Notes: generated by a model not told the origin, from the sequence alone. Shown: positions 28 to 60,500, counted from the first letter of the stretch. The stretch is 64,000 nt of DNA from IMGVR_UViG_3300014494_000005:186001-250000; one strand, 5' to 3'. Translations and numbers: made by a program.

Positions 28-2793
28 TTATGCCCCAACATCAGCAAATGATGCACCAGAAGGAGTAATTGTAAATGTAATTCCAATAAATTCAACAGCA
101 CGTGTTGGTTTTAAGAATATTTCACCATACAATTCGTTTCTATCCATTGTTTCTGGAGTATTATTTGAATTATCCATTTTAATTCTAAAGTCATTCAAAC
201 CTCTTTCTCTCTTAATACTGTCAAGAATAGGATTTGCTTTTGCCAAGAATTGGTCAATTGTTGTTTGGTCATTTTGTTCAAATACAAGTCTGATAGCAAT
301 ATTTGCAATAAGAACTTTAATTTGAAGTAATAATCTACGAACATTGATTCTATCAAGTGCACTTTCTTTAACTTGTAAAGTTTTTTGTCCGAAGATTGCT
401 GTACCTGCTTCTGCAAAATCAGCCATTGGGTTAATTCTACCAGCATATAAAATATCACGAGCTTCTTGAGACAATTTGTATCTTGATTTAATTGCATTAG
501 TTACACCACGATTTAAACCAGCAGGTGCAAACCAAGGAAATTTTACATTATCTGTAAATGCCATTGCTCTTACAACTTCGCCAGTAGCTGGAATATAAAC
601 ATTAACATTATTTTGATTATCTCTTATTTGAATCCAAGGGAAATATGTACATGAATAACTACTATCAATATCAACATCATTAAGTAATTCCACAACTTGT
701 TGAGCAGCTTCTACATCATCAGGAACACCAGTATTACCATTATTTGTTATATTTATATCAATATTTGGTGAATCAATTACATATAATGAATCGGTTCTTT
801 GTTGTTCAATCATATCAATTGTATCTTGAACTAAAATACTTTGGTCTGACCAGTTAATACCCGGAGTTGAGAAAAGATTAATTGTAACTTGTTCTGGGTT
901 TGAAAATGTATTTATTGCTGTTTGCCATGCATGAAAATCATTTGTTGGTATTGTTTCTGGATGACCGGGATGACCACTAAATATACCACCCTGTTGATAA
1001 CCATCACCATATGAACGGTCTTCACCATTTATACCTCTATTAACATCCCATCCATCAAAACCACGAGCAGGAACAAAAGTGAATTTTCTTGTTTTAATAC
1101 TATAATATGGATTTAGTGGGTCATTGGTATCAAGATATGTTTGTATTTGTCCCGCACCAACTTCAAATTGACCAATATATATTGTACCATTAGTATATAT
1201 ACCAGTTGCACCAGAATCCATATGGAATCCTTTTGTTTTAACAAAACCGTTTTGACCATTATAATTAAAAAAGTTCTGATTAATACCACTACCAGTTGAA
1301 TTGGTACTATCATAACCATGTTCAGAAATACCTAAAAATACTTTATTTACTTTATCAGTTTCGCTATATTTTGTTTTATAGAAAATTTTTGGTGGGATAC
1401 CATTAGTTGTTGGGTCACTTGTTGCTGACATTGCATAGTCATTAAATTCATAACCTTCAAAACCTGCAGGAAATACATCATTTGGAATATCTGTTGCAAG
1501 TTCAACCATAATATATTTACTTGCAAGATTATAAATACCATCAGTAGTACCAATTTTCTGTGCAATATAACTACTAAGTCCTTCAATCATTGTACATTTT
1601 GAATATGTTTCAAGTACTATTGGACTTGCATCAGTATCGTTAAAATCACGAACAACTACATCAAATTCATAAGTGTCTGGATTAATATTAACAATACTTA
1701 TTTTAATTTCATCATTTGCAGCATCACCATCAGAAATACTAATAAATTTGAATAATCTATTAACATGATTACCCATTAATTGAGATACAACCCAAGGAGT
1801 TTCAGGTGTTTGGAATCCAATTTTATAATTTGTAAAATTATTTGAAGTGGCAGTAATTAATGTTGTATTAATACCATAACCAATACCTTCTGAATCTAAT
1901 TTCTGAATAAGGTCAGGATAAATTGCTTGAACCCAAATTTTTGTTTTTTTGTCTTTTGGTGCTGAACCAATTACATTTGGTAAGAAACTACTTGAGTTTG
2001 GATTTAATGATACTGTATAATATTGTGTACTTCCAGTACTATATGCTCTTAGCATAAATTGACTAAATAAATCACCAACACCAATATTTGTAGTATTACC
2101 ACTTACAGTAAGTATAGTTGTATCAAATGTTGTAAGTTGAGTACTATGTGGTTGAATTATTGAAGTACCTCTGCTTCTAATTACAGCTAACACCATATTT
2201 TCATATTGACTATATGAAGTACCTGTAAATAATGTTACTTTATCTCTAGTTGTACCACTTCCAGTCATACTCAATGTAGTTGCAGTAAATGTGTGTACAT
2301 ATTCAGTAAATGTATTACCAAGATGTTTAGTAAATCCTGAAGAATACGTACCTGTTTGACCCTGATACATCAATGCGACACCCAAATATTGGTTATTTGT
2401 AAATGTATGGGTTGAAACAACAGGAATTCCACTTGATGCAACAGTACTTGGGTCAACACCAGCACTTAATGTTATTGCCCATGCATTTCCAGCATCATAT
2501 CCACTAAGTCCTAATACTCTGGTTACCCAAAGTTGATTAGTTTCACTAAGATATGAGTTGGCAACATATGGTAATTGATATTGGAGATTTCCATTTGAAA
2601 GTTTTTGTGTGCTTTGTCCACCAAATCTGCTTGTGAATTGAGTTGAATCTTGAACGAATACAGGTTCAAAAGCAGGTCCTTTAAGTGTTTCTCCTACAAG
2701 ACCCAAACAGGTAATTCCCACATTACGTACAACATACGTTAAATCACGTTCTTTAAATTTTACACCCGGTGAGGTGAATACAAATTCTGCCAT
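28..2793 (-). CDS. Tail sheath protein (T4 gp18-like)
   Basis: N-terminal SPGV..E and GET.KGPAFEP motifs; C-terminal WFAPAG.NRG, RINP, GQKTLQ..SALDRINVRRLL and KPTRAVEFI sheath motifs. Confidence 0.95.
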   Translation of the reverse strand: MAEFVFTSPGVKFKERDLTYVVRNVGITCLGLVGETLKGPAFEPVFVQDSTQFTSRFGGQSTQKLSNGNLQYQLPYVANSYLSETNQLWVTRVLGLSGYDAGNAWAITLSAGVDPSTVASSGIPVVSTHTFTNNQYLGVALMYQGQTGTYSSGFTKHLGNTFTEYVHTFTATTLSMTGSGTTRDKVTLFTGTSYSQYENMVLAVIRSRGTSIIQPHSTQLTTFDTTILTVSGNTTNIGVGDLFSQFMLRAYSTGSTQYYTVSLNPNSSSFLPNVIGSAPKDKKTKIWVQAIYPDLIQKLDSEGIGYGINTTLITATSNNFTNYKIGFQTPETPWVVSQLMGNHVNRLFKFISISDGDAANDEIKISIVNINPDTYEFDVVVRDFNDTDASPIVLETYSKCTMIEGLSSYIAQKIGTTDGIYNLASKYIMVELATDIPNDVFPAGFEGYEFNDYAMSATSDPTTNGIPPKIFYKTKYSETDKVNKVFLGISEHGYDSTNSTGSGINQNFFNYNGQNGFVKTKGFHMDSGATGIYTNGTIYIGQFEVGAGQIQTYLDTNDPLNPYYSIKTRKFTFVPARGFDGWDVNRGINGEDRSYGDGYQQGGIFSGHPGHPETIPTNDFHAWQTAINTFSNPEQVTINLFSTPGINWSDQSILVQDTIDMIEQQRTDSLYVIDSPNIDINITNNGNTGVPDDVEAAQQVVELLNDVDIDSSYSCTYFPWIQIRDNQNNVNVYIPATGEVVRAMAFTDNVKFPWFAPAGLNRGVTNAIKSRYKLSQEARDILYAGRINPMADFAEAGTAIFGQKTLQVKESALDRINVRRLLLQIKVLIANIAIRLVFEQNDQTTIDQFLAKANPILDSIKRERGLNDFRIKMDNSNNTPETMDRNELYGEIFLKPTRAVEFIGITFTITPSGASFADVGA

Positions 2794-3069
2794 GTTATTT
2801 AATTATTTTATTTTTCATTATTATTTTTCATTTTATAAACAATGCCTTATTGTTTTTCAAATAAATACTAAAAAATAATTGAAAAGAAGATTTGTCTTAA
2901 TTATTATCATCTTGTTATTTTGTTCATAAATCCAGATTTTATCAAATTTTATTTATTTCGGTTTATATTTTTAAAAATTTCAATTTTTCTATCTTAAATT
3001 CTTTTAAATTCTTCCAATAAAATTTTATATTTATTTTAAAAAAAATTTTATTTTTAAAAAATAAGTATT

Positions 3070-10693: not shown

Positions 10694-11517
10694 TTAAAGA
10701 AACAATAAAATTTAATAATCTTGATTTGAATTTAAAATTCAGTTTAGGTTCTAGTATAGGTCTTACCGGATATCAACAAGAAATAGATAATTTAACAATT
10801 GATACTGAGGACGAACTTATTAATCCTGTAAATGATACTGAAGTACGTAGATTTAATAGTACCATTCAAAATAATTTATCATTTTATTTTCATTTAGATA
10901 GTGCTATAAATGAAATGGCAAATAATGTTGATTCTATTTCATTTATAAATGCAGGATTTACACAAGATGAAATAGATTTTAATCGTGACACAATACGCAA
11001 TAGTTTTTTTATTTTAGATTTTTATGACACCTATAATCCAAATACTCAAATTAAAATATTTACAACATATTTAACAAAAATTCTTGCAAATAATAATACT
11101 GCAAATTATTTAGTTGGTACAAGTCCTTTAATTAATTTTTTAAAAATAAAAAACCAATTTAATTATTGGTATGTACCACAATCATATATTGATTTATCTA
11201 ATGTATATGCTACTGGATACATTAAATTTAGTTTTTATAATGCAAAATATGGTAAAATTCAATTATTTTATAATAGAGATAATCAAGCACTTAAAACACC
11301 AGAAAAATTATATTTTAAAGCAATTTTGAATTTAACTTCGAGAACATGGAGTTTCTCAACAACATCAAGTCCAAATATCAATGCATATGAATTATATAAT
11401 AGTTCTACATATACAAATAAAATAAATAACACAGTATCTGATTTTAATAATTTGAAACAAAATTATCCAACGGGAAATACATTCAATTCTACAAAAGATA
11501 GTTATACAACAGAATAA
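10684..11517 (+). CDS. Putative structural protein
   Basis: 277-aa Asn/Thr-rich ORF overlapping the previous gene. Confidence 0.45.
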   Translation: MPVIKETIKFNNLDLNLKFSLGSSIGLTGYQQEIDNLTIDTEDELINPVNDTEVRRFNSTIQNNLSFYFHLDSAINEMANNVDSISFINAGFTQDEIDFNRDTIRNSFFILDFYDTYNPNTQIKIFTTYLTKILANNNTANYLVGTSPLINFLKIKNQFNYWYVPQSYIDLSNVYATGYIKFSFYNAKYGKIQLFYNRDNQALKTPEKLYFKAILNLTSRTWSFSTTSSPNINAYELYNSSTYTNKINNTVSDFNNLKQNYPTGNTFNSTKDSYTTE

Positions 11518-50873: not shown

Positions 50874-51080
50874 ATGAGTAAATTATCAGAAATTTATACT
50901 GGGTGGAAAAATTTCACTTTTCCAAATCTTAAAACAGAAGAATTAGCAAAAAAAAGAATTGAAATTTGTGTTAACAATTGTGATAAATTAAATAAAAGAA
51001 ATTTCTGTAAACTTTGTGGCTGTTATATGCCCGCAAAAGTAAGAAGTCCTAAATCGCATTGTTTTTTAAAAAAATGGTAA
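50874..51080 (+). CDS. Small Cys-rich protein
   Basis: RIEIC..C.......C..CGC.M.AK......C..KKW. Confidence 0.6.
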   Translation: MSKLSEIYTGWKNFTFPNLKTEELAKKRIEICVNNCDKLNKRNFCKLCGCYMPAKVRSPKSHCFLKKW

Positions 51081-51221
51081 TTAAATAGTATTTGTTGTAA
51101 CTACATATGAATCATCTAATTCTAATACATTGTTTTTTGATAATTCATTAAGTAACTCATTTTTTCTTTTATCAATTAATTCATTAACTTTATTTAATAT
51201 TTTTTTTCTCTCATTTGTCAT
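51081..51221 (-). CDS. Small hypothetical protein (46 aa)
   Basis: Read by hand (MTNERKKILNKVNE...). Confidence 0.35.
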   Translation of the reverse strand: MTNERKKILNKVNELIDKRKNELLNELSKNNVLELDDSYVVTTNTI

Positions 51222-51223
51222 GA

Positions 51224-51838
51224 TTAGCAATAAGGAATATTTTGAATCTTATCATTCATTTCTCTTGTACGGATATCCAATTTAGTTTCTGTTCCAATAA
51301 AGTCTGCAGTATATTCCCTAATAAATAACATTTGTATTTTTTGTGGTGCTTTTTTGAATGCAATAAATTCTATTTCATCACCGTCTTCAGTAGATAATGT
51401 AACATTTATATCATTCCAATTTAATGAGTTAAACCATGATTCACCATATGGTGCAACATCATTACCACCCTTATCATAAAAACCATCTTTACTAATTGAA
51501 ATATTATCGCTATCGAAATTTAAATAAAATATAATTGGTTTTTTTTGTAGGTCATAAGTATATTGAATTTTCAAGTAATATTCAATTGTAAGTTTATTTG
51601 CATCATCTAAATCCTCGTCCCAATTTCCACCAATACGAGCATCAGCAACTTCTACAATTTTTATTTTATTTTTTTTACTTAAAAGTGAATCACAAATAAA
51701 TTGTTTTTGCATATCTTCATTTTTTAGCAAAGTAATGTCTTCCTGTCCTTTAAGATGTTCATCATTACCTAAAAAATCGAATTCTGTAATTACTTCATTA
51801 ATTATTTTTATGATTTTTTTATTCTTCATCAAAATCAT
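51224..51838 (-). CDS. Hypothetical protein
   Basis: IIKIINE N-terminus; phage motif at 51844-51852. Confidence 0.55.
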   Translation of the reverse strand: MILMKNKKIIKIINEVITEFDFLGNDEHLKGQEDITLLKNEDMQKQFICDSLLSKKNKIKIVEVADARIGGNWDEDLDDANKLTIEYYLKIQYTYDLQKKPIIFYLNFDSDNISISKDGFYDKGGNDVAPYGESWFNSLNWNDINVTLSTEDGDEIEFIAFKKAPQKIQMLFIREYTADFIGTETKLDIRTREMNDKIQNIPYC

Positions 51839-51929
51839 TTTTTTATAAATACTAAATATATTATTTAAAAGTTGATGAATATCATCAAAAATATTGAAAT
51901 TATATTTACAATCTATGTATTTATGAACA

Positions 51930-52080
51930 GAGAATCATTGCTTAATTAGTAATTAAGTTAGCTCTGAGAACAGGAATGATTTTTAAAAATTTATTGCCAG
52001 AAAGTGGTTATGTAAATTTTTAAGACTTGACTAAGAATTTTAAAAGTAATTGCATCACAATAAAAGTGATGCAATTTTTT
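51930..52080 (+). ncRNA. Candidate structured small RNA
   Basis: GTATTTATG at 51917-51925, nested hairpins, terminator at 52048-52080, no substantial ORF. Confidence 0.35.
52048..52080 (+). terminator. Intrinsic terminator
   Basis: aattgcatcac-aataaaa-gtgatgcaatt-tttt. Confidence 0.8.
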
Positions 52081-52103
52081 ATAAAAATATTTTTCAATTT
52101 TTA

Positions 52104-52134
52104 TTTGTATTTATAATTTTATTGCATATATTTG
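52104..52134 (+). promoter_or_regulatory. Bacteroidota primary-sigma promoter for tRNA operon 1
   Basis: TTTG (52104-07) -N19- TATATTTG (52127-34), exact consensus spacing. Confidence 0.85.
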
Positions 52135-52171
52135 TAGTCATTTTGTTATTCATATTATGGATTTTTAGATT

Positions 52172-52246
52172 ATGAAAAATTTAATACATATTCAACCCCA
52201 ACCACAGCAACATCCACAGATGTCTGAATGGGGAAATTATGCTTAA
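52172..52246 (+). CDS. Attenuator leader peptide 1, MKNLIHIQPQPQQHPQMSEWGNYA
   Basis: 10 of 11 consecutive codons are His/Gln/Pro; contains antiterminator strand GAATGGGG (52226-33). Confidence 0.85.
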   Translation: MKNLIHIQPQPQQHPQMSEWGNYA

Positions 52247-52277
52247 ATTTTTCGAAAGAAGTTTTAGGTTAATGTTG

Positions 52278-52305
52278 ACCCCATTCGTAAGAGTGGGGTT
52301 TTTTT
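52278..52305 (+). terminator. Attenuator terminator 1
   Basis: accccattc-gtaa-gagtggggt-tttttt; its 5' arm CCCCATTC is complementary to 52226-52233. Confidence 0.9.
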
Positions 52306-52316
52306 ATTATATATAT

Positions 52317-52401
52317 CGGGGTGTAGGTCTGTAGTTGGTAGCAGTCCTGCCTTGGAAGCAGGTGGAGAAATCCCTCGCACGTTCGAACCGTGTCACCCCG
52401 A
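52317..52401 (+). tRNA. tRNA-Pro(TGG) with long variable arm
   Basis: cggggtg/caccccg acceptor; cctgc-CTTGGAA-gcagg; gga-gaaa-tcc variable hairpin; TTCGAAC T loop. Confidence 0.9.
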
Positions 52402-52473
52402 AGTGATTGATGTTAAATTACTTGCACGTAGTAATCACTGCATAACCAAAAGGTTAACTAAAAATTTAGCAAA

Positions 52474-52484
52474 GTTCTTTGAAA
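52474..52484 (+). promoter_or_regulatory. boxA-like antitermination motif GTTCTTTGAAA
   Basis: Resembles rRNA-operon boxA; preceded by small hairpins; similar motifs at 54522 and 57995. Confidence 0.5.
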
Positions 52485-52511
52485 TACCTAATAATAATAT
52501 ATAATTTATAT

Positions 52512-52585
52512 GGGATGATTGGTGTAGCGGTAGCATGCCAGATTGTGGTTCTGTCGGGGAGGTTTCAAATACCTCATCACCCCCA
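52512..52585 (+). tRNA. tRNA-His(GTG)
   Basis: Encoded G-1 opposite C73; TTGTGGT anticodon loop; gaggt-TTCAAAT-acctc T arm. Confidence 0.88.
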
Positions 52586-52642
52586 AATTCTCTAGTGATG
52601 TAATTAATATATTGCTGGTTTGAATATATTGAAACAATAAAT

Positions 52643-52729
52643 TGTTCTGTGATGAAATTGGCTAAACATGTCAGACTTTGACTCTGATGCTCTTTAGTGA
52701 GTTTGTAAGTTCGAATCTTACCAGAACAG
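52643..52729 (+). tRNA. tRNA-Gln(TTG) with long variable arm
   Basis: tgttctg/cagaaca acceptor, G73; tcaga-CTTTGAC-tctga; gctc-tttagt-gagt variable hairpin. Confidence 0.9.
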
Positions 52730-52778
52730 CAATATTAATTTTTTTAATTATCTTTGTTAAAATTTTAAATTAATTATT

Positions 52779-53732
52779 ATGTCATATAATTTATTTCTTG
52801 ATGACTTCCGCAGTCCTATCGATTCTTTTTATTATTTAGGGAATCCAATATATAATATTCTTGATTGGAAAATTGTACGAAATTATGATGAATTTGTGAA
52901 AACGATTCAAGAAAATGGTATTCCAGAAACTATTAGTTTTGACCATGATTTGGAAAATTCTGAAGAGTGGATGGATATTATTGGATATGAAGGAATTTAC
53001 ATGGTTTCAAATTTTGGTCGTATTTTAAGAACAAAAAAATCAAAAGGTACAACAGGTAATAATATTTTAACTCCATTAAAAAACATATCTGGATTATATG
53101 TAACATTATATAATTGCGGTAAAAATATACACAAAAAAATTCATAGATTAGTTTTAGAATCATTTATGGGTATTAATAATGAAAAATCACAAGTTAATCA
53201 TATTGATGGAAATAGATGGAATAATCATATTAATAATTTAGAGTGGTGTACATCATCTGAAAATATATGGCATTCACATAATGTATTATATAGAGATTTT
53301 TCTGCATATGGTGAAAACCATAAAAATAGTATGACAGTATCTCAATATGATATAAATAATAATCTAATTAATATTTATGGTTCAGTTAATGAAGCAGGAA
53401 GGCAATTAAATATTAGTTTTTCGAACATTGCAAAATGTGCTAGAGGTGAAAGAAAAATTGCTGGTGGATTTATTTGGAAATATGAAAATCTCAAAGTAAC
53501 AATAAATACAAAAATTTCACACATTGAATATAAAGATTATGCTAAGAATTTCTTTATACCTAAATATGAAGAAAAAACTGGTTATCATTGTGCTAAATGG
53601 TTAATAGATTATTGCATTGACAATAAATTAGAATTACCAAAAACAATTTTAATACACTCAATGAATCCAGTTGGAAGTCGAAATATTAAATCATTATTTG
53701 ATAGTTATTTCAAATCACTTAATTTATCTTAA
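52779..53732 (+). CDS. Cyclic-phosphate-processing receiver-like (cREC) protein with an in-frame NUMOD4-HNH endonuclease insert
   Basis: LFLDDFR..ISFDHDL N-half and EEKTGYHCAKWL..HSMNPVG C-half flank EEWMDIIGYEGIYMVSNFGR (NUMOD4), VNHIDGNRWNNHINNLEW (HNH) and a NUMOD1-like end. Confidence 0.7.
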   Translation: MSYNLFLDDFRSPIDSFYYLGNPIYNILDWKIVRNYDEFVKTIQENGIPETISFDHDLENSEEWMDIIGYEGIYMVSNFGRILRTKKSKGTTGNNILTPLKNISGLYVTLYNCGKNIHKKIHRLVLESFMGINNEKSQVNHIDGNRWNNHINNLEWCTSSENIWHSHNVLYRDFSAYGENHKNSMTVSQYDINNNLINIYGSVNEAGRQLNISFSNIAKCARGERKIAGGFIWKYENLKVTINTKISHIEYKDYAKNFFIPKYEEKTGYHCAKWLIDYCIDNKLELPKTILIHSMNPVGSRNIKSLFDSYFKSLNLS

Positions 53733-53735
53733 TTT

Positions 53736-54152
53736 TTATTTAACCCAAAATTTTCCTAATAATGTAATAATTGTGATTAGTATTGATATTCCCGCAACAA
53801 TGTATGCAATCATAGCATTTCCACCTGCTTTTATATTTTCAGATTTTTCGACTTTAATTGTAAGTGCATCAATTTTATCATTAGCATTTTTTAACAATAC
53901 TTCTGTCTCAATACGTGGCATTAATGTTCTCGACTGGTCACCAAGTTGTGCACGAAATTCATTAACACATTCAAAACGTTTTTCTGTTGCAACCTCTGCC
54001 TTATTAACAGCTAATTCCATTGCTTGATACCTTTGAGTTACACGTTCGTCTCTTTCAGCAAGCAATATTTTATAATGTTCATATTGATTTTTTAATACAA
54101 CATCATAATGCTCTTTAAGAGCTTCAAGCGTCCAAATTGTGTTATTTTCCAT
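53736..54152 (-). CDS. Coiled-coil protein with C-terminal TM helix (holin-like?)
   Basis: Long coiled coil ending in a hydrophobic helix. Confidence 0.5.
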   Translation of the reverse strand: MENNTIWTLEALKEHYDVVLKNQYEHYKILLAERDERVTQRYQAMELAVNKAEVATEKRFECVNEFRAQLGDQSRTLMPRIETEVLLKNANDKIDALTIKVEKSENIKAGGNAMIAYIVAGISILITIITLLGKFWVK

Positions 54153-54250
54153 TAATTTATTAGTGTTAGATATTTATTAGCCATTTAATGTTAATAAATA
54201 CTTTTTAGAACGTCTAAAAATATTGTATATAAAAAATAATTTAAAAAAAG

Positions 54251-54281
54251 TTTGTATATATTGTAACATTTTATATCTTTG
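54251..54281 (+). promoter_or_regulatory. Bacteroidota primary-sigma promoter for tRNA operon 2
   Basis: TTTG (54251-54) -N19- TATCTTTG (54274-81), followed by CA. Confidence 0.85.
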
Positions 54282-54321
54282 CAACGTATTTAGAATAAAA
54301 GAAACTATTTTTAATTTTAAA

Positions 54322-54414
54322 ATGATGAAAAAAGTACTCGACATATTGGTATCAGAGATGGCAGTTGTCCTATTATGGGCAGATGCAGAAGATACATTAT
54401 ATTCAGTCGGGTAA
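54322..54414 (+). CDS. Attenuator leader peptide 2, MMKKVLDILVSEMAVVLLWADAEDTLYSVG
   Basis: Codons cover every anticodon of the downstream operon; contains antiterminator strand CAGTCGGG (54404-11). Confidence 0.85.
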   Translation: MMKKVLDILVSEMAVVLLWADAEDTLYSVG

Positions 54415-54450
54415 TATTTATTACAAATAACACCTCCTTTCTTAAATGAA

Positions 54451-54486
54451 AAATCCCGACTGCTAAAATGGTCGGGATTTTTTTTT
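54451..54486 (+). terminator. Attenuator terminator 2
   Basis: aaatcccgac-tgctaaaatg-gtcgggattt plus T run; CCCGACTG (54455-62) is complementary to 54404-54411. Confidence 0.9.
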
Positions 54487-54490
54487 AGAA

Positions 54491-54520
54491 TTTGTAACAA
54501 ATAAAATTTTTCTTTGTATA
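54491..54520 (+). promoter_or_regulatory. Variant phage promoter TTTGTAACA-N15-TGTATA just after the attenuator
   Basis: One mismatch to the motif seen exactly at four other sites. Confidence 0.45.
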
Positions 54521-54521
54521 C

Positions 54522-54534
54522 TGTTCTTTGACAT
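54522..54534 (+). promoter_or_regulatory. boxA-like motif TGTTCTTTGACAT
   Basis: Resembles rRNA-operon boxA; 12 nt before the first tRNA. Confidence 0.55.
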
Positions 54535-54545
54535 GTTGGAAATTC

Positions 54546-54615
54546 GTTCTCGTAGTATAATGGTTAGTATGTATCACTGTCTATGATAAGGAGGGGTTCG
54601 AATCCCACGGGGACG
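54546..54615 (+). tRNA. tRNA-Asp(GTC)
   Basis: gttctcg/cggggac acceptor, G73; tatca-CTGTCTA-tgata; T stem imperfect. Confidence 0.85.
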
Positions 54616-54686
54616 GCAATGATTATTAATGTGTTATAATAATTATCTGTTATATTAAATTATATTAAAAATGAAATAATTAATTT

Positions 54687-54770
54687 GCTGCATTATACAA
54701 GTGGTTAAAGTGGCTTGCCCTTCAAGCAAGTGCCGAAAGGCTTCGCAGGATTCGAATTCCTCATGCAGTA
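54687..54770 (+). tRNA. tRNA-Glu(TTC) with C33 and long variable arm
   Basis: gctgcat/atgcagt acceptor; cttgc-CCTTCAA-gcaag; gcc-gaaa-ggc variable hairpin. Confidence 0.8.
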
Positions 54771-54797
54771 CTGAAATATAAATTTAAAATTTAAATT

Positions 54798-55187
54798 ATG
54801 AAAAATTTGTATATTAATGCAACTCACAGTACACCCGCAGTTTTTTTTAATATTAATAAAGGTATTCTTACAATAACAGGAAAATCATTTCCTGAGAATT
54901 CCTCAATGTTTTTTGATGATATTGATAAAGCATTAGATGAATTTATTAAAGAACATTCTAATGTTGATTTAACAATTACTTGTGAATTTGAATATATTAA
55001 TTCATTATCAAATAAAGCAGTTTTTAATATATTAGAAAAAGCAGCAAAATCTCTTAATAATGTTATAGTTGTTTGGAAATATGAAGAAAACGATGAAGAT
55101 ATGAAAGAGCAGGGAGAATTTTTTGAAACATCTTTTAAAACTAAAATTCATTTTCATTATAAACATTTTTTAATACAACCAGAATGA
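54798..55187 (+). CDS. SiaC-family (DUF1987) regulatory phosphoprotein
   Basis: T.STP.V.F....G.L.I.GKSFPEN...F; EYINSLS; VWKYEENDEDM.E.GE.F. Confidence 0.8.
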   Translation: MKNLYINATHSTPAVFFNINKGILTITGKSFPENSSMFFDDIDKALDEFIKEHSNVDLTITCEFEYINSLSNKAVFNILEKAAKSLNNVIVVWKYEENDEDMKEQGEFFETSFKTKIHFHYKHFLIQPE

Positions 55188-55192
55188 TAAAT

Positions 55193-55265
55193 GCTCGGTT
55201 CGTCTAATGGTTAGGACAAAAGATTCTCATTCTTTTAAATATGTTTTCGATTAACATACCGAGTA
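55193..55265 (+). tRNA. tRNA-Glu(CTC)
   Basis: gctcggt/accgagt acceptor; aaaga-TTCTCAT-tcttt; atgtt-TTCGATT-aacat. Confidence 0.88.
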
Positions 55266-55343
55266 CAGAAATAAATATGATGTTGGAAATACTAACATTA
55301 TCATATAAAATTTGATTTAATGCTGGCTTTTATCAACAAATAT

Positions 55344-55418
55344 ATTCCCTTAACTCAGATGGGTCAGAGTGTTTGCCTTACAAGCAAAATGTCGTAGGTT
55401 CGAAGCCTACAGGGAATA
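55344..55418 (+). tRNA. tRNA-Val(TAC)
   Basis: attccct/agggaat acceptor; tttgc-CTTACAA-gcaaa; canonical cloverleaf. Confidence 0.95.
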
Positions 55419-55503
55419 CAAAAGATTGTAGTGCCAAATACAATCATAATATCGCCTTAATTACCGATATTTAATATTTATCGGTTAAAAAGGTGATACC
55501 TTT

Positions 55504-55591
55504 CTCTCAGTGTTGTAACTGGTAGCCAAGCTGGTTTAAGAAACCAGTGCGAAATAATAGTAGCGTGTCGGTTCGAGTCCGACTTGAGAGA
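55504..55591 (+). tRNA. tRNA-Leu(AAG), A34, long variable arm
   Basis: ctctcag/ttgagag acceptor, A73; ctggt-TTAAGAA-accag places AAG at 34-36. Confidence 0.8.
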
Positions 55592-55599
55592 CAATAAAC

Positions 55600-55674
55600 G
55601 TGAATGTAGCCAAATGGTTAATAGGCAATCGATTTAGACTCGAAAATTTGCTGGTTCGACTCCAGTCATTCACA
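55600..55674 (+). tRNA. tRNA-Leu(TAG) with short variable loop
   Basis: gtgaatg/cattcac acceptor; tcga-TTTAGAC-tcga; ~5-nt variable region. Confidence 0.8.
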
Positions 55675-55740
55675 CAAAGATATTTTTTAAAAAACAATAA
55701 TCTTTCCTAATATTTCATGTATTTATATTAAATATAATAT

Positions 55741-56469
55741 ATGAAATATACAAAAGAATTTTTAGAACCAATTGTTCTTAAAAGCAAAGCAATTAGTGAA
55801 GTATTACGTTATTTAAAATTAAATGCTAATGGTGGTAATCATGCACATATTTCAAAAACCATAAAAAAATATAATATTGATACATCACATTTTCTTGGAC
55901 AAAGTTGGAATAGAGGTAAATCGCCACGAAATAGACATACCATAGAAAGTTTCATTAAACTTGTTTTAAAATTAAATGGTATGGGATGGCAAAGTCATCA
56001 AATAAAATTAAAATTATTTGAATTAAATTTAAAAGAAAGAAAATGTGGAATTTGTGGACAAAATGAAATATGGAATAATAATAAACTTGGTTTAGAGTTA
56101 GACCATATTAATGGAATACACAATGATAATAGATTAGAAAATTTAAGAATTTTATGTCCAAATTGTCATTCACAAATGCCAACACAAGGTGTTAGAAATA
56201 TTCATAATGGAAAAATAATTAACATTAAAGTTCATAAAGAAAAAATAATAAAAAATAAAATAATTAATATTTGTAATTGTGGTAAAAAAATAAAAAATAA
56301 TTCTAAAACATGTGTTAATTGCTATTCATTAAAACAAAGAAAAGTTAATAGACCATCATTTGAAACACTTCAAGAAGAAGTTAAAACATTAGGATATACT
56401 GGAACTGGAAGAAAATATGGTGTGAGTGATAATACGATAAGAAAATGGATTAAATTTTACACGAAATAA
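55741..56469 (+). CDS. HNH homing endonuclease inside the tRNA array
   Basis: CGICG...LELDHINGIHNDNRLENLRILCPNCH; C-terminal HTH; GTATTTATA at 55719. Confidence 0.9.
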   Translation: MKYTKEFLEPIVLKSKAISEVLRYLKLNANGGNHAHISKTIKKYNIDTSHFLGQSWNRGKSPRNRHTIESFIKLVLKLNGMGWQSHQIKLKLFELNLKERKCGICGQNEIWNNNKLGLELDHINGIHNDNRLENLRILCPNCHSQMPTQGVRNIHNGKIINIKVHKEKIIKNKIINICNCGKKIKNNSKTCVNCYSLKQRKVNRPSFETLQEEVKTLGYTGTGRKYGVSDNTIRKWIKFYTK

Positions 56470-56472
56470 AAT

Positions 56473-56548
56473 GGGGTATGGGACTGCTAGGGTTGGTCAT
56501 CTCGTCTGCACCGAGAAAATCAGGAGGATTCGAATTCCTCATGCTCCA
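56473..56548 (+). tRNA. tRNA-Ala(TGC) with C33
   Basis: ggggtat/atgctcc acceptor with G3:U70 and A73; tctcg-TCTGCAC-cgaga. Confidence 0.85.
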
Positions 56549-56587
56549 CATTATCAAATAGTTATATAGATAATCACAATAAAATAT

Positions 56588-56661
56588 GGCACAGTACTCC
56601 AATTGGTAGAGAGAAACGGCTTAAACCCGTTAAAGTGTGAATTCGAATTTCACTTGTGCTA
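56588..56661 (+). tRNA. tRNA-Leu(TAA) with short variable loop
   Basis: ggcacag/ttgtgct acceptor; aacgg-CTTAAAC-ccgtt; 5-nt variable region. Confidence 0.82.
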
Positions 56662-56683
56662 CAAAATAAATTAATTATAATAT

Positions 56684-56755
56684 ACGTCTGTCGTCTAATG
56701 GTTAAGATAACGGCTTCCAACCCCGTGGATGAGGTTTCGATTACTTCCAGACGTG
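56684..56755 (+). tRNA. tRNA-Trp(CCA)
   Basis: A1-U72 and G73; acggc-TTCCAAC-cccgt with a 31-39 mismatch. Confidence 0.82.
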
Positions 56756-56821
56756 CTAAAATAAAAAATAAATATTATATTATTTGCATATATTTATATA
56801 ATAAACTAAATTTGTCAAATT

Positions 56822-57550
56822 ATGTTAATAATAAATTACAATAAAAAAGATTATTACGATGGTGTTGTTGGTACGATGGGTATCGATAAAACACTTGTTT
56901 ATGACCGTAAAATAATTGAGGTTGAAGAAAAAAAAATTCCATCAATATTTCAAAGAAAGGGATTTTCTTGGAAAAAAAGTAAAGATTCACCTTTTTTAAA
57001 TATTGAAAATCATACAATAAAAAATGAACAACATAAAAATTATCAAAATTGTAGTTCTTTTATTATTGGATTTTGTGGAAAACTATATATTGGTTGGAAA
57101 TTATATAGCGAAAACAGAAAAGTTTATCCAGAAAAACTTACAACTACAATTACATATGATTTTGATTTAATAAAAACAATTATTGATAATAAAGGTTGGT
57201 ATGGAAACCTTGAAGAGCAGTATAATTATATTAAAAATTATAATTCACTTCAATTATTTAGAGATTTTAAAGCACCTGTTTTTATTTATGATAGTGATTA
57301 TAATAGAATAAATATTGGTCATTATCATAAACGTAATGAAAAACTTTTTATTAATCCAATTTTAAGCGATTATCATTTTTATAAAATATTTGATAGTTTT
57401 CAAGCATTTCAAGAAATAAGTATGTTTATGGGTGGTGTGCTTGGTAAAGGCGAAAAAGAAATTATTGAAGTGGCTGATAAATATAAAATTACTCAACATG
57501 GTTTTGATTATAAATGGAGTTTTAGAAAAAAATCTGAAAAGAATAAATGA
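56822..57550 (+). CDS. Hypothetical protein
   Basis: 242-aa ORF within the tRNA operon. Confidence 0.6.
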   Translation: MLIINYNKKDYYDGVVGTMGIDKTLVYDRKIIEVEEKKIPSIFQRKGFSWKKSKDSPFLNIENHTIKNEQHKNYQNCSSFIIGFCGKLYIGWKLYSENRKVYPEKLTTTITYDFDLIKTIIDNKGWYGNLEEQYNYIKNYNSLQLFRDFKAPVFIYDSDYNRINIGHYHKRNEKLFINPILSDYHFYKIFDSFQAFQEISMFMGGVLGKGEKEIIEVADKYKITQHGFDYKWSFRKKSEKNK

Positions 57551-57813
57551 AACAAGAATTGCATAAAATATTTATAATTCCTGCTCGATTTATTAAACAA
57601 ACTAAAGATAATAAATATGTTATTCGATGTCTAATTGAAAAAAATATTACTGAAGACCGTATATTTGATGATAATTCACTTAAAGGATTAATAAATCCTA
57701 AGTATTTATTAATCGGAATAATGACAGGAGTTGGATATATGCAAATAAATTTTGTTGATGCTAATGATTATGAAAAAATGTTTAATGTAAAATGGAAAAT
57801 TTTAGTAAAATAA
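57547..57813 (+). CDS. Hypothetical protein
   Basis: ATGA-type overlap with the previous gene. Confidence 0.5.
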   Translation: MKQELHKIFIIPARFIKQTKDNKYVIRCLIEKNITEDRIFDDNSLKGLINPKYLLIGIMTGVGYMQINFVDANDYEKMFNVKWKILVK

Positions 57814-57986
57814 GCGATGAAATAATATCACAACTTAAATCTATATGTTATAGTGGTGATTTATCTGATATTGGTAATGAAATTGGTATTGTAATTGCTA
57901 AATATTTTGATAAAGATAATACTGTTGATGATTTCATTCATGGTTTAAAACATGGAATATCATTAACTGATGGAACACATGGTTAA
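57792..57986 (+). CDS. Hypothetical protein
   Basis: 64-aa ORF. Confidence 0.45.
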   Translation: MENFSKISDEIISQLKSICYSGDLSDIGNEIGIVIAKYFDKDNTVDDFIHGLKHGISLTDGTHG

Positions 57987-58009
57987 TATAATAAGTTCTT
58001 TAAAATAAT

Positions 58010-58372
58010 GGGGATGAATGGATTTGACTGTATGTAGAAAAATGATGTAAGCAAGTAGTAGTTGAATCGGACTACTTTTAAAAAGGTTCAAAACAATAAA
58101 TGCAGAAGACATTATGTCTATTCCTACTTCCTTGACAAAAGGAAATAGCGTATTTGTAAAGAGTGCTGAACTTGCAATTGCGTAATAGGAAAAAAATAAA
58201 CAGCAAAAAACTTCCAAGTCAGAAGGGAAGTAAAAACAATTCTGGACAGTTTTGTAGTTGTTCTGGAAAAATACAATTAACATTTTGCTGATTTAGGAAA
58301 ATCAAATAAACTTGTAGAAAACTTATTAATCACATTGCAACACCGGGGAATCGATGCCCCGCATCTCCACCA
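58010..58372 (+). ncRNA. ssrA: tmRNA; tag reading frame AEDIMSIPTSLTKGNSVFVKSAELAIA (58102-58182, stops TAA TAG)
   Basis: GGGGATG...GGATTTGAC 5' end pairs with CATCTCC-A-CCA 3' end with G3:U; ATAAAT-GCA resume context; hydrophobic Ala-ending tag. Confidence 0.93.
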
Positions 58373-58408
58373 AATATTTTTCATCTCCACAGTATTTATA
58401 TTAAAATA

Positions 58409-58960
58409 TTGATGGAGATGAAAAATTTAAAAAAAAGAAAAACTAAATTAATTAAATGCGATAATTGTGGAAATGATTTTGAAAAATCGATATCCGAAAT
58501 AAAAAGAAATAAAAATCATTTTTGTTCATTAAGATGTTCAGCAATCCATCGTAATGATATCAATCGAAAAAATTTTGAAGGATATATAGGAAATCCAAAA
58601 TTTTTAATTGCAAATAATCATAAAGATGAATATACAGGTTTTCGTGATTTTATTAGAAGAGCAAAACAAAGAAATAAATTAGGGAATTTAACATTAATTG
58701 ATTTAAAAGAACAATGGCAAAAACAAAATGGAATTTGTCCTTATACTGGAATACAATTAGAATTGCCAAATTATTCTAAAACAAAAAAATTTTCAATACA
58801 AGAAGCAGCATCTTTAGATAGAATAAATTCAAATAAACCATATGAAAAAGATAATATTGTTTTTGTAAGTACACCAATTAATTATATGAAAAATACGATG
58901 ACAGAAGAAGAAACAATTGCATTTTGTAAAAAAATTGCATTATTTTGGAATAATAAATAA
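58409..58960 (+). CDS. HNH-like endonuclease with N-terminal zinc ribbon
   Basis: CDNCG..FCSLRCS; CPYTG..SLDRINSNKPYEKDNIVFV; GTATTTATA at 58392. Confidence 0.75.
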   Translation: MMEMKNLKKRKTKLIKCDNCGNDFEKSISEIKRNKNHFCSLRCSAIHRNDINRKNFEGYIGNPKFLIANNHKDEYTGFRDFIRRAKQRNKLGNLTLIDLKEQWQKQNGICPYTGIQLELPNYSKTKKFSIQEAASLDRINSNKPYEKDNIVFVSTPINYMKNTMTEEETIAFCKKIALFWNNK

Positions 58961-58961
58961 T

Positions 58962-59048
58962 GGCGAAGTGATGAAATAGGTAGTACATGCAGGTCTTAAA
59001 AACCTGTGAACAGTAATGTTCGTGTGGGTTCGATTCCCATCTTCGCTA
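58962..59048 (+). tRNA. tRNA-Leu(TAA), canonical class II
   Basis: ggcgaag/cttcgct acceptor; caggt-CTTAAAA-acctg; long variable arm. Confidence 0.93.
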
Positions 59049-59092
59049 CGAATAAATTAATTAAAGTATTTATATAAAAACTTATAATAACA

Positions 59093-59257
59093 ATGAATAT
59101 ATTAATTATAAATCAATCAACACCAATTAACTATCCAATAATAATTGTACCTGTTGGTTGTCAATTTAATATACCTAATAGAATAATGTGTAGTGGTGGT
59201 TTTCTTGTTTATAATAAACCATCTGAAAAAATATTAATTAATTATGGCAAATATTAG
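59093..59257 (+). CDS. Small hypothetical protein (54 aa)
   Basis: Read by hand; follows GTATTTATA at 59066. Confidence 0.35.
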   Translation: MNILIINQSTPINYPIIIVPVGCQFNIPNRIMCSGGFLVYNKPSEKILINYGKY

Positions 59258-59360
59258 AAAACCACATCCAAAAGAAGATGATTGTGGATGTGGAAAATCA
59301 GTTAAAATAACTGAAAGAAAAAAAATTGAATATAGACGAATTATAAAGAAAAGAGGATAA
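59244..59360 (+). CDS. Small basic protein with CGCG motif (38 aa)
   Basis: MANIRKPHPKEDDCGCGKSVKITERKKIEYRRIIKKRG. Confidence 0.4.
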   Translation: MANIRKPHPKEDDCGCGKSVKITERKKIEYRRIIKKRG

Positions 59361-59443
59361 CTCCTTGTGATGAAATTGGTAGCACGTGCTCGCCTCAAAA
59401 GCGAGTGCCTTCGGGCGTGTCGGTTCGACTCCGACCAAGGAGA
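59361..59443 (+). tRNA. tRNA-Leu(CAA)
   Basis: ctccttg/caaggag acceptor; ctcgc-CTCAAAA-gcgag; gcc-ttcg-ggc variable arm. Confidence 0.95.
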
Positions 59444-59462
59444 CAAATAGAAGGGAAATTTT

Positions 59463-59957
59463 ATGTATATGGTATTACAGATTCCCATGCGTGAACAGAA
59501 TTATGATTTTGATTGTAGTCTTGCAGTAGCATGGTCGTACTTAAAACATTCTAAAATAAAAGTTGATTATAATACACTTTTAAAAATATCAAAAATTTCA
59601 CCAATTGATGGATTATGTCCAGAAAAATTAGTTATTTTACTAAAAAAATTTGGTTTAGAAACCAATTTAGAAGAACGTAAAAATATTAAATATTTAAAAA
59701 ATCAAATAATTACTAAAAAACCAGTAATTGTTCTTTTACAAGCAAATAAAGAATATAAGAAATCTTGGAAAAATACTTGGACTCACGGACATTATTGCAT
59801 TATATTTGGTTTTGATGACTTTCGGGTATTTATTTATGACCCATATATTGGTGGAATTAAATTATTCGCATATGACCAATTTAATAATCGTTGGCATGAT
59901 GAATGGAATGGTAAAAAATATATTAAGTCAGTAATAATAAAAAATGAAAATTTATGA
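59463..59957 (+). CDS. Peptidase C39-like cysteine protease
   Basis: EQ..DFDCSLA (Gln/Cys), GHYCII.GFD (His), YDP (Asp). Confidence 0.8.
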   Translation: MYMVLQIPMREQNYDFDCSLAVAWSYLKHSKIKVDYNTLLKISKISPIDGLCPEKLVILLKKFGLETNLEERKNIKYLKNQIITKKPVIVLLQANKEYKKSWKNTWTHGHYCIIFGFDDFRVFIYDPYIGGIKLFAYDQFNNRWHDEWNGKKYIKSVIIKNENL

Positions 59958-60118
59958 ATTTTGGATTAAGAAAAAATAGTAAAATAAAATTCAAAGAAAT
60001 ACCTGAAGAAATTGATGAATCTGAAATTGATTTAGATAATCCAGAAGCAATGGAATTAACATGGAAAAGCATTGAATGGTCATTGAAAAAACATAAAGAT
60101 ATAATCTCAAAAATATAA
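59954..60118 (+). CDS. Small hypothetical protein (54 aa)
   Basis: Read by hand; ATGA overlap with the C39 gene. Confidence 0.4.
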   Translation: MNFGLRKNSKIKFKEIPEEIDESEIDLDNPEAMELTWKSIEWSLKKHKDIISKI

Positions 60119-60170
60119 AATATGAAAAAAATTTTGAATTCTTGTAACGCACTAAAGCGTAACAAGAAAA

Positions 60171-60500
60171 ATGGGAAATAAAAATTTAGTAAAAACAACC
60201 ACAAATCGTGGCGAATTCAATCGTGCATATAAATTGCATCTTGAACGAATAGGAAAAATTCATTGTTCATACTGTGGTTTTCATCTTGGTGAAAATAATG
60301 GCAAAAAATGGTATGGTGGAATTATTTACGATGACATGGAAACTTGTCATGGTAAAAGAAAAGGAAATAATACAAGATTTCCAAACTGGAAATTGGTTTC
60401 TAAAAATAGAAAACAATGGATGCGAAAACCAATTAAAATTGTTGAAGAACATAGAATTGGACACAAAAGAACATATGTTGAGATTAAATTCTCAACATAA
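60171..60500 (+). CDS. Hypothetical basic protein
   Basis: CSYCG.H motif; WK..SK.RKQW ending. Confidence 0.5.
   Translation: MGNKNLVKTTTNRGEFNRAYKLHLERIGKIHCSYCGFHLGENNGKKWYGGIIYDDMETCHGKRKGNNTRFPNWKLVSKNRKQWMRKPIKIVEEHRIGHKRTYVEIKFST

Follow-up and report, generated by a model that had tools for sequence, protein, structure and literature searches.

The closest described systems are the leader-peptide (ribosome-mediated) transcription attenuators of amino-acid biosynthetic operons (trp, his, leu, thr, ilv, pheA). In these, a short, promoter-proximal open reading frame (ORF) carries a run of regulatory codons and is followed by an intrinsic terminator; a mutually exclusive antiterminator shares the 5' arm of that terminator, and the position of the ribosome decides between the two structures. 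Three further systems are close. The pheST attenuator of E. coli appears to place a leader peptide in front of a gene of the translation apparatus, and to respond to decoding of the codons that the product serves. T-box riboswitches generally also choose between terminator and antiterminator according to tRNA status. Finally, T4-like and other large phages typically carry arrays of tRNA genes on one strand. Why they do so, and when the genes are used, is debated; proposed reasons include codon-usage compensation, independence from a degraded host, and escape from tRNA-cleaving defences.

The locus of interest lies in a 64,000-nucleotide stretch of DNA (IMGVR_UViG_3300014494_000005:186001-250000; hereafter, the window) from a roughly 350-kb T4-like phage with about 25% G+C and promoters of the Bacteroidota type. 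The phage has a T4-like major head protein (phrog_138), portal and protease, and its closest capsids, about 40% identical, belong to uncultured huge phages and to a Flavobacterium phage. A preliminary description of the locus proposed a leader-peptide attenuator in front of tRNA-Pro, tRNA-His and tRNA-Gln, and every element that it listed was confirmed base for base. Inspection of the window further revealed a second unit of the same architecture about 2 kb downstream, with a different leader and a different set of tRNA genes. The features of both units are listed in Table 1.

Table 1. Features of the two tRNA units in the window (positions counted from the first nucleotide of the window).
Feature	Position	Strand	Description
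Leader-1 promoter	52104-52134	+	Bacteroidota type: TTTG 52104-52107, 19-nt spacer, TAtaTTTG 52127-52134; conserved in all family-1 relatives
Leader-1 ORF	52172-52246	+	24 codons plus TAA (MKNLIHIQPQPQQHPQMSEWGNYA)
Leader-1 sensing run	52187-52219	+	Codons 6-16, reading H I Q P Q P Q Q H P Q; 10 of 11 are His/Gln/Pro
Leader-1 region 1	52196-52200	+	CCCCA; pairs with TGGGG of region 2 in the minimum-energy fold; not significant beyond base composition
Leader-1 region 2	52226-52233	+	GAATGGGG; 5' strand of the antiterminator; encodes E-W-G; 97.6% of cells paired with region 3, one compensatory UA to CG change
Small hairpin inside the antiterminator loop	52241-52269	+	GCTTAA (last codon plus stop) pairs with TTAGGT; RNAalifold consensus with 3 pairs that change on both sides
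Leader-1 terminator	52277-52305	+	Stem 52277-52300; region 3 (CCCCATTC) 52279-52286; GTAA loop; region 4 (GAGTGGGG) 52291-52298; T run 52299-52305
tRNA-Pro(TGG)	52316-52402	+	87 nt; starts 10 nt after the T run; ARAGORN and Rfam (40.2 bits)
Sigma-70-like match	52466-52495		Between tRNA-Pro and tRNA-His
tRNA-His(GTG)	52513-52584	+	ARAGORN and Rfam
tRNA-Gln(TTG)	52643-52730	+	88 nt, with a long variable arm; ARAGORN and Rfam
Leader-2 promoter	54251-54281	+	TTTG, 19 nt, TAtcTTTG; conserved in relatives and reused before the family-3 leaders
Leader-2 ORF	54322-54414	+	30 codons plus stop; codons 14-24 (54361-54393) read AVVLLWADAED, all amino acids served by the downstream tRNAs
Leader-2 region 2	54404-54411	+	CAGTCGGG; abuts the stop codon
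Leader-2 terminator	54450-54486	+	Region 3 (CCCGACTG) 54455-54462; region 4 (GGTCGGG) 54470-54476; then the T run
tRNA-Asp(GTC)	54545-54617	+	First tRNA of unit 2; ARAGORN and Rfam
tRNA-Glu(TTC)	54687-54770	+	Rfam only; its homologue in the related locus L006 is called by ARAGORN
Rest of the unit-2 array	55193-59444	+	Interrupted by ORFs and a tmRNA gene: Glu(CTC), Val(TAC), Leu(AAG), Leu(TAG), Leu(TAA), Trp(CCA), Leu(TAA), Leu(CAA); the homologous array is contiguous in the related locus L062

Several tests indicate that the arrangement is more than chance. The complementary pair GAATGGGG and CCCCATTC occurs once in the window and in 0 of 100 shuffles, and the first leader folds with a z-score of -3.95. 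The exact promoter pattern occurs three times in 64 kb (1.6 expected), and two of the three sit before the two leaders, whose ORFs begin 37 and 40 nt after the -7 box. Ten His/Gln/Pro residues among 23 has a binomial P = 7e-6 against the phage's own proteome. Of 14 strong terminators in the window, only the two leader terminators have a GC-rich complement about 40 nt upstream (score 14, against 9 or less for the others).

We next searched for relatives. A blastn search of GenBank phages with positions 51900-52800 gave no match, and the clade is known only from metagenomes: IMG/VR contains near-identical contigs of up to 349 kb, as well as many diverged relatives. A scan of bacterial genomes gave no host, the only true hit being a phage contig deposited as a bacterial MAG. 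Relatives were screened for (i) the promoter, (ii) an ORF of 15-60 codons, (iii) a hairpin with a T run, and (iv) a tRNA within 200 nt, which yielded 57 distinct leaders; a further scan added 12 leaders of a Lys/Tyr type. In a scan for the pattern WADAED, most of the 88 hits were chance matches inside long ORFs, and only 4 new leaders emerged. While the screen required an ORF, 59 of the 61 promoter hits carry a recognisable leader; of the other two, one is cut by a contig end before any ORF and one has no leader at all.

The resulting collection of about 70 distinct leaders falls into four unrelated families that share one architecture: promoter, ORF of 18-47 codons, region 2, a spacer of about 40 nt, region 3, region 4, a T run, then tRNAs. 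Family 1 (23 distinct leaders) carries a Pro/Gln/His run followed by EWGNYA, and precedes arrays made essentially only of Pro, His and Gln tRNAs, although copy number and order vary. Three loci that appeared to have lost tRNA-His carry divergent tRNA-His genes missed by ARAGORN (two, both GTG, were found by Rfam and one was read directly from the sequence), and one locus has an extra call of tRNA-Phe at the end of its array. Family 2 (22 leaders) is of the LLWADAED type and precedes Asp, Glu, Val, Leu, Ala and Trp tRNAs. Family 3 is rich in Thr, Ser, Ile, Asn, Arg, Gly, Phe and Cys, and family 4 (13 leaders) is of the TYYYGKKSYKK type and precedes only Lys and Tyr tRNAs. Family 3 was encountered behind the family-2 promoter, in a part of the same phage genome outside the window, and provided a blind test: its tRNA set was predicted from the peptide and written down before the downstream sequence was examined. 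The prediction held, with ARAGORN finding Thr, Thr, Cys, Ile, Ser, Ser, Phe, Gly, Met and Asn tRNAs, and Arg further on. In the window's phage the four units lie on one strand within about 25 kb, with leader 4 about 1.7 kb and leader 3 about 8.5 kb past the end of the window. Since each family is one homologous lineage, the independent evidence amounts to four families rather than 70 leaders.

Leader composition mirrors the downstream tRNA set. The mean own-set fraction, against proteome background, is 0.36 against 0.084 in family 1, 0.66 against 0.31 in family 2, and 0.82 against 0.47 in family 3; families 2 and 3 contain practically no Pro, His or Gln. Across the families, 17 of 19 amino acids are most frequent in the leader family that precedes their tRNA gene (P = 6e-9), and the two misfits—Trp in family 1 and Gly in family 4—are encoded inside region 2, where the RNA sequence is constrained. 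Rare amino acids fit as well: the single Cys codon of family 3 and the single Trp codon of family 2 are conserved, and tRNA-Cys and tRNA-Trp sit in those arrays. Selection acts on set membership rather than on sequence, with within-set shares of amino-acid changes of 0.81, 0.93 and 0.94, against 0.33, 0.39 and 0.52 expected. Pro and Gln codons vary synonymously, and indels are multiples of three. Leaders are also enriched 2-3 fold, relative to phage genes, in rare G/C-ending codons, of which CTC, ACG, AAG, GAG and TTG have matching phage isoacceptors (Leu-AAG, Thr-CGT, Lys-CTT, Glu-CTC and Leu-CAA). In the window, the Leu codons of leader 2 (CTC, TTG, CTA, TTA) correspond to the four Leu anticodons present (AAG, CAA, TAG, TAA). 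However, within-family tracking of synonymous codons against anticodons is weak (P = 0.04, 0.02 and 0.92) and confounded by truncated loci and shared ancestry, and tracking of Met codons against tRNA-CAT genes could not be interpreted.

In nearly every leader, a segment at or near the end of the ORF (region 2) is complementary to the 5' arm of the terminator (region 3), at a constant distance of about 40 nt; this complementarity reaches p<=0.01 in 40 of 57 leaders. The pairs covary. Family 1 has GAATGGGG/CCCCATTC and, in two lineages, GAACGGGG/CCCCGTTC, while family 2 shows 17 double-change cells against 8.8 in shuffles, with flanking pairs that extend into the terminator loop, where region 4 cannot pair. 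In L006, a three-way G-to-A change is seen in regions 2, 3 and 4. The terminators covary too. By contrast, the region 1 to region 2 hairpin of the trp paradigm was not supported as a general feature. It is present in the minimum-energy folds of both window leaders, and CTCGAC is conserved in family 2 (9 of 21 leaders at p<=0.05), but there is no support in families 1, 3 and 4 beyond base composition, so untranslated RNA would read through.

To examine the geometry of the proposed switch, we first folded the RNA with the complete terminator present. Under these conditions the terminator always wins at equilibrium, and hence the model depends on co-transcriptional kinetics, as in classical attenuators. 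The RNA was therefore folded as it exists before region 4 is made, with a 28-nt ribosome footprint masked. In this model, the antiterminator of leader 1 is allowed with the A site on codons 2-15 and lost from codon 16-17, with the matched run ending at codon 16. In leader 2 it is allowed on codons 2-24 and lost from codon 25, with the run ending at codon 24, and in a family-4 leader (L136) it is allowed on codons 2-16 (codon 17 partly, 0.28) and lost from codon 18, with the run ending at codon 16. Over all leaders, matched codons are about 100% up to 4-5 codons before region 2 and collapse at -3/-2 in all four families, the position expected if the run must lie where a stalled ribosome does not yet cover region 2. 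In families 3 and 4, and in some family-2 leaders, the stop codon lies 13-27 nt past region 2; here, a terminating ribosome would have to block pairing by steric hindrance rather than by covering region 2.

Taken together, these results support ribosome-mediated attenuation in which each tRNA operon is induced when decoding of its own codons is slow, a reading to which we assign a probability of about 0.8. We propose that a ribosome stalled anywhere in the run leaves region 2 free to pair with region 3 as soon as the latter is transcribed, such that the terminator cannot form and the tRNA genes are transcribed. A ribosome that passes the run in time sits on region 2 or in the spacer just behind it, regions 3 and 4 form the terminator, and transcription ends. 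The outcome would be a demand-driven, self-limiting supply of each tRNA group, with ribosome speed on the matched codons as the demand signal. In the absence of transcript ends, ribosome profiles or reporter data, translation of the leaders, stalling and the direction of the switch are inferred. The core of the preliminary description is supported, including by the test that it had itself proposed, namely whether the codons of homologous leaders track the tRNA set. Two points qualify this. Firstly, that the tRNAs are transcribed only when decoding fails cannot be shown: a conserved motif, GTTCTTTGACATGTTGGAAATTT, lies directly before the first tRNA in many loci, and a copy lies, with the sigma-70-like match, between tRNA-Pro and tRNA-His in the window. 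This GTTCTTTGACATGTTGG motif could be a bypass promoter, or a processing site, although GTTCTTTGA is not supported as a general phage promoter (there are 3 copies in the window, one of which is inside an ORF). Secondly, the classical anti-antiterminator does not, as described above, appear to be general across the families.

A bolder reading, which we consider only slightly more likely than not, is that the phage carries a complete "codon test-strip" system, in which four attenuators divide all 20 amino acids among them and each leader samples the codons, including rare ones, that its operon's isoacceptors read. The phage would thus measure decoding capacity in the infected cell group by group, and top up only the tRNAs that run short. 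Shortage could follow shut-off of host tRNA synthesis, a mismatch between phage and host codon usage, or cleavage of host tRNAs by anticodon-nuclease defences. This would be the first known feedback control of tRNA gene transcription by the decoding of the tRNAs' own codons. Such attenuators also offer compact natural parts that report the availability of defined tRNA groups.

Other explanations are less likely. The attenuators could, hypothetically, sense general translation capacity—whether any ribosome follows the polymerase in time—with leader composition being incidental or serving another purpose. Without a ribosome, the antiterminator forms by default in leaders 2 and 3 (P = 0.91 and 1.0), and the region 1 to region 2 pairing does not appear to be general; the basic switch therefore reports whether a ribosome has arrived. 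We nevertheless consider this reading unlikely, because it does not explain why four leaders divide the amino acids in the same way as the four tRNA operons, why matched codons stop exactly at the footprint boundary, or why substitutions stay within the set. Similarly doubtful is that the signal is amino-acid starvation (uncharged tRNA), as in biosynthetic operons, rather than a shortage of tRNA molecules. A stalled ribosome cannot tell a missing tRNA from an uncharged one, as appears to be established for the trp and his attenuators (modelling in PMC1183508). However, making more tRNA does not relieve a lack of amino acid, so the regulated product would not correct the signal, and the inclusion of rare codons served by specific phage isoacceptors fits a test of tRNA supply.

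It is more improbable still that the short ORFs are ordinary genes for small proteins, each with an ordinary terminator, and that the tRNAs are made by leaky readthrough or from their own promoters. Family-2 peptides are indeed hydrophobic and well conserved, and both the conserved motif before the first tRNA and the sigma-70-like match are compatible with separate promoters. Against this, four unrelated peptides each mirror the downstream tRNA set and vary freely within it, the antiterminator covaries and is absent from other terminators in the window, and the short distance between the T run and tRNA-Pro leaves no room for a promoter. A T-box-like riboswitch that binds tRNA directly, without translation, would also tie expression to tRNA status, but can all but be dismissed, given that Rfam reported no T-box match even at E up to 1 in positions 51000-60500, that ORFs, start codons and reading frame are conserved, and that many different codons are represented rather than one specifier.

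How, then, does this locus compare with the systems described at the outset? A T-box typically binds uncharged tRNA through a specifier codon and needs no translation, whereas here the reading frame is conserved. With regard to the tRNA arrays of large phages, we found no description of leader ORFs and attenuators in front of them in literature searches that did not cover subscription journals, such that prior description cannot be excluded; in the same searches, leader-peptide attenuators were found only for biosynthetic, resistance, ribosomal-protein and similar genes. The pheST attenuator appears to control an aminoacyl-tRNA synthetase rather than tRNA genes, to sense a single amino acid, and to be bacterial. 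No sequence or Rfam relationship to the attenuators of biosynthetic operons was detected; the one weak Thr_leader match (23.3 bits against a gathering score of 55, E = 0.78, at 54403-54485) is at chance level. The switch itself is classical, but differs from the attenuators of biosynthetic operons in that (i) the regulated genes are tRNAs, not enzymes, (ii) each leader tests 2 to 9 amino acids at once, rather than one or two, (iii) the region 1 to region 2 anti-antiterminator appears weak or absent in most families, and (iv) the system is encoded by a phage and comes as a set of four that together covers all amino acids.

The unit-2 tRNA region (the array behind the family-2, Asp/Glu/Val/Leu/Ala/Trp leader) contains a phage-encoded tmRNA gene (Rfam RF00023, 68.6 bits). 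Relatives have one too: locus L084 with a tag peptide, and locus L107 at 119 bits. In addition, three of the window's tRNA genes are long (see table). For tRNA-Gln(TTG), the Rfam alignment shows a 15-nt insertion that forms a class-II-like long variable arm, while tRNA-Pro(TGG) and tRNA-Glu(TTC) were judged long by length only; such arms are unusual for these amino acids. Notably, relatives carry both a normal and a long copy (for example, Pro of 77 and 96 nt in locus L013). A further tRNA-like sequence, with a good T arm and anticodon loop TCTGCAC (TGC, possibly Ala), is called by neither ARAGORN nor Rfam; the related locus L006 has two tRNA-Ala(TGC) genes at the corresponding place.

Comparison with relatives also reveals interruptions. 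An HNH endonuclease domain (phrog_59) is inserted in a gene that is short and uninterrupted in L006, and other ORFs break up the unit-2 tRNA array, which is contiguous in the related locus L062. The tRNA island appears to have been invaded by homing-endonuclease-type genes.

Coordinates of the additional features
Sequence	Positions	Strand	Feature
Window	52049-52075		Terminator-like hairpin
Window	52316-52402		tRNA-Pro(TGG), 87 nt
Window	52643-52729		tRNA-Gln(TTG), 88 nt
Window	54687-54770		tRNA-Glu(TTC), 84 nt
Window	54523-54544 and 52474-52482		Conserved motif GTTCTTTGACATGTTGGAAATTT (also in many loci)
Window	52779-53732 (+); also 54799-55190 and 55743-56469	+ (first)	HNH endonuclease domain insertion; other ORFs
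Window	54431-54445		Family-2 spacer motif CACCTCCTTTCTTAA
Window	about 56472-56551	+	tRNA-like sequence
Window	58010-58372	+	tmRNA gene
L105	about 2590-2900		Non-coding stretch and tRNA-like gene
L122	about 10780-11090	-	Non-coding stretch and tRNA-like gene
L135	about 2730-3020		Non-coding stretch and tRNA-like gene
L144	9036-9400		Apparently structured RNA

The surroundings of the leaders revealed several points of interest. Firstly, a terminator-like hairpin, readable on both strands, sits just upstream of the leader-1 promoter, with no + strand gene before it; it may act as an insulator. Secondly, GTTCTTTGACATGTTGGAAATTT ends directly at the first tRNA of most family 1–3 units, and could be a bypass promoter or a processing site. 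Thirdly, CACCTCCTTTCTTAA appears to resemble the 3' tail of 16S rRNA; in predicted folds, it pairs with AGAAAG in the 5' untranslated region. Finally, in five loci (L107, L132, L147, L152 and L157), a basic ORF of about 43 aa sits after the family-1 terminator, between the attenuator and the Pro/His/Gln tRNAs, and so would be under the same control.

Other loci depart from the leader arrangement. In L105, L122 and L135, a conserved non-coding stretch of about 250 nt, plus an odd tRNA-like gene with an enlarged anticodon region, precedes the Lys tRNAs in place of a family-4 (Lys/Tyr) leader. In locus L144, the family-2/3 promoter is followed by a G+C-rich, apparently structured RNA rather than by a leader ORF. 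The leader-1 unit itself is also carried by a 362,763-bp contig deposited as a "Candidatus Paceibacterota" MAG (JBAZIW010000001.1); this contig has the same length as IMG/VR phage contig 3300029288_000055, and is probably a phage genome binned as a bacterium.
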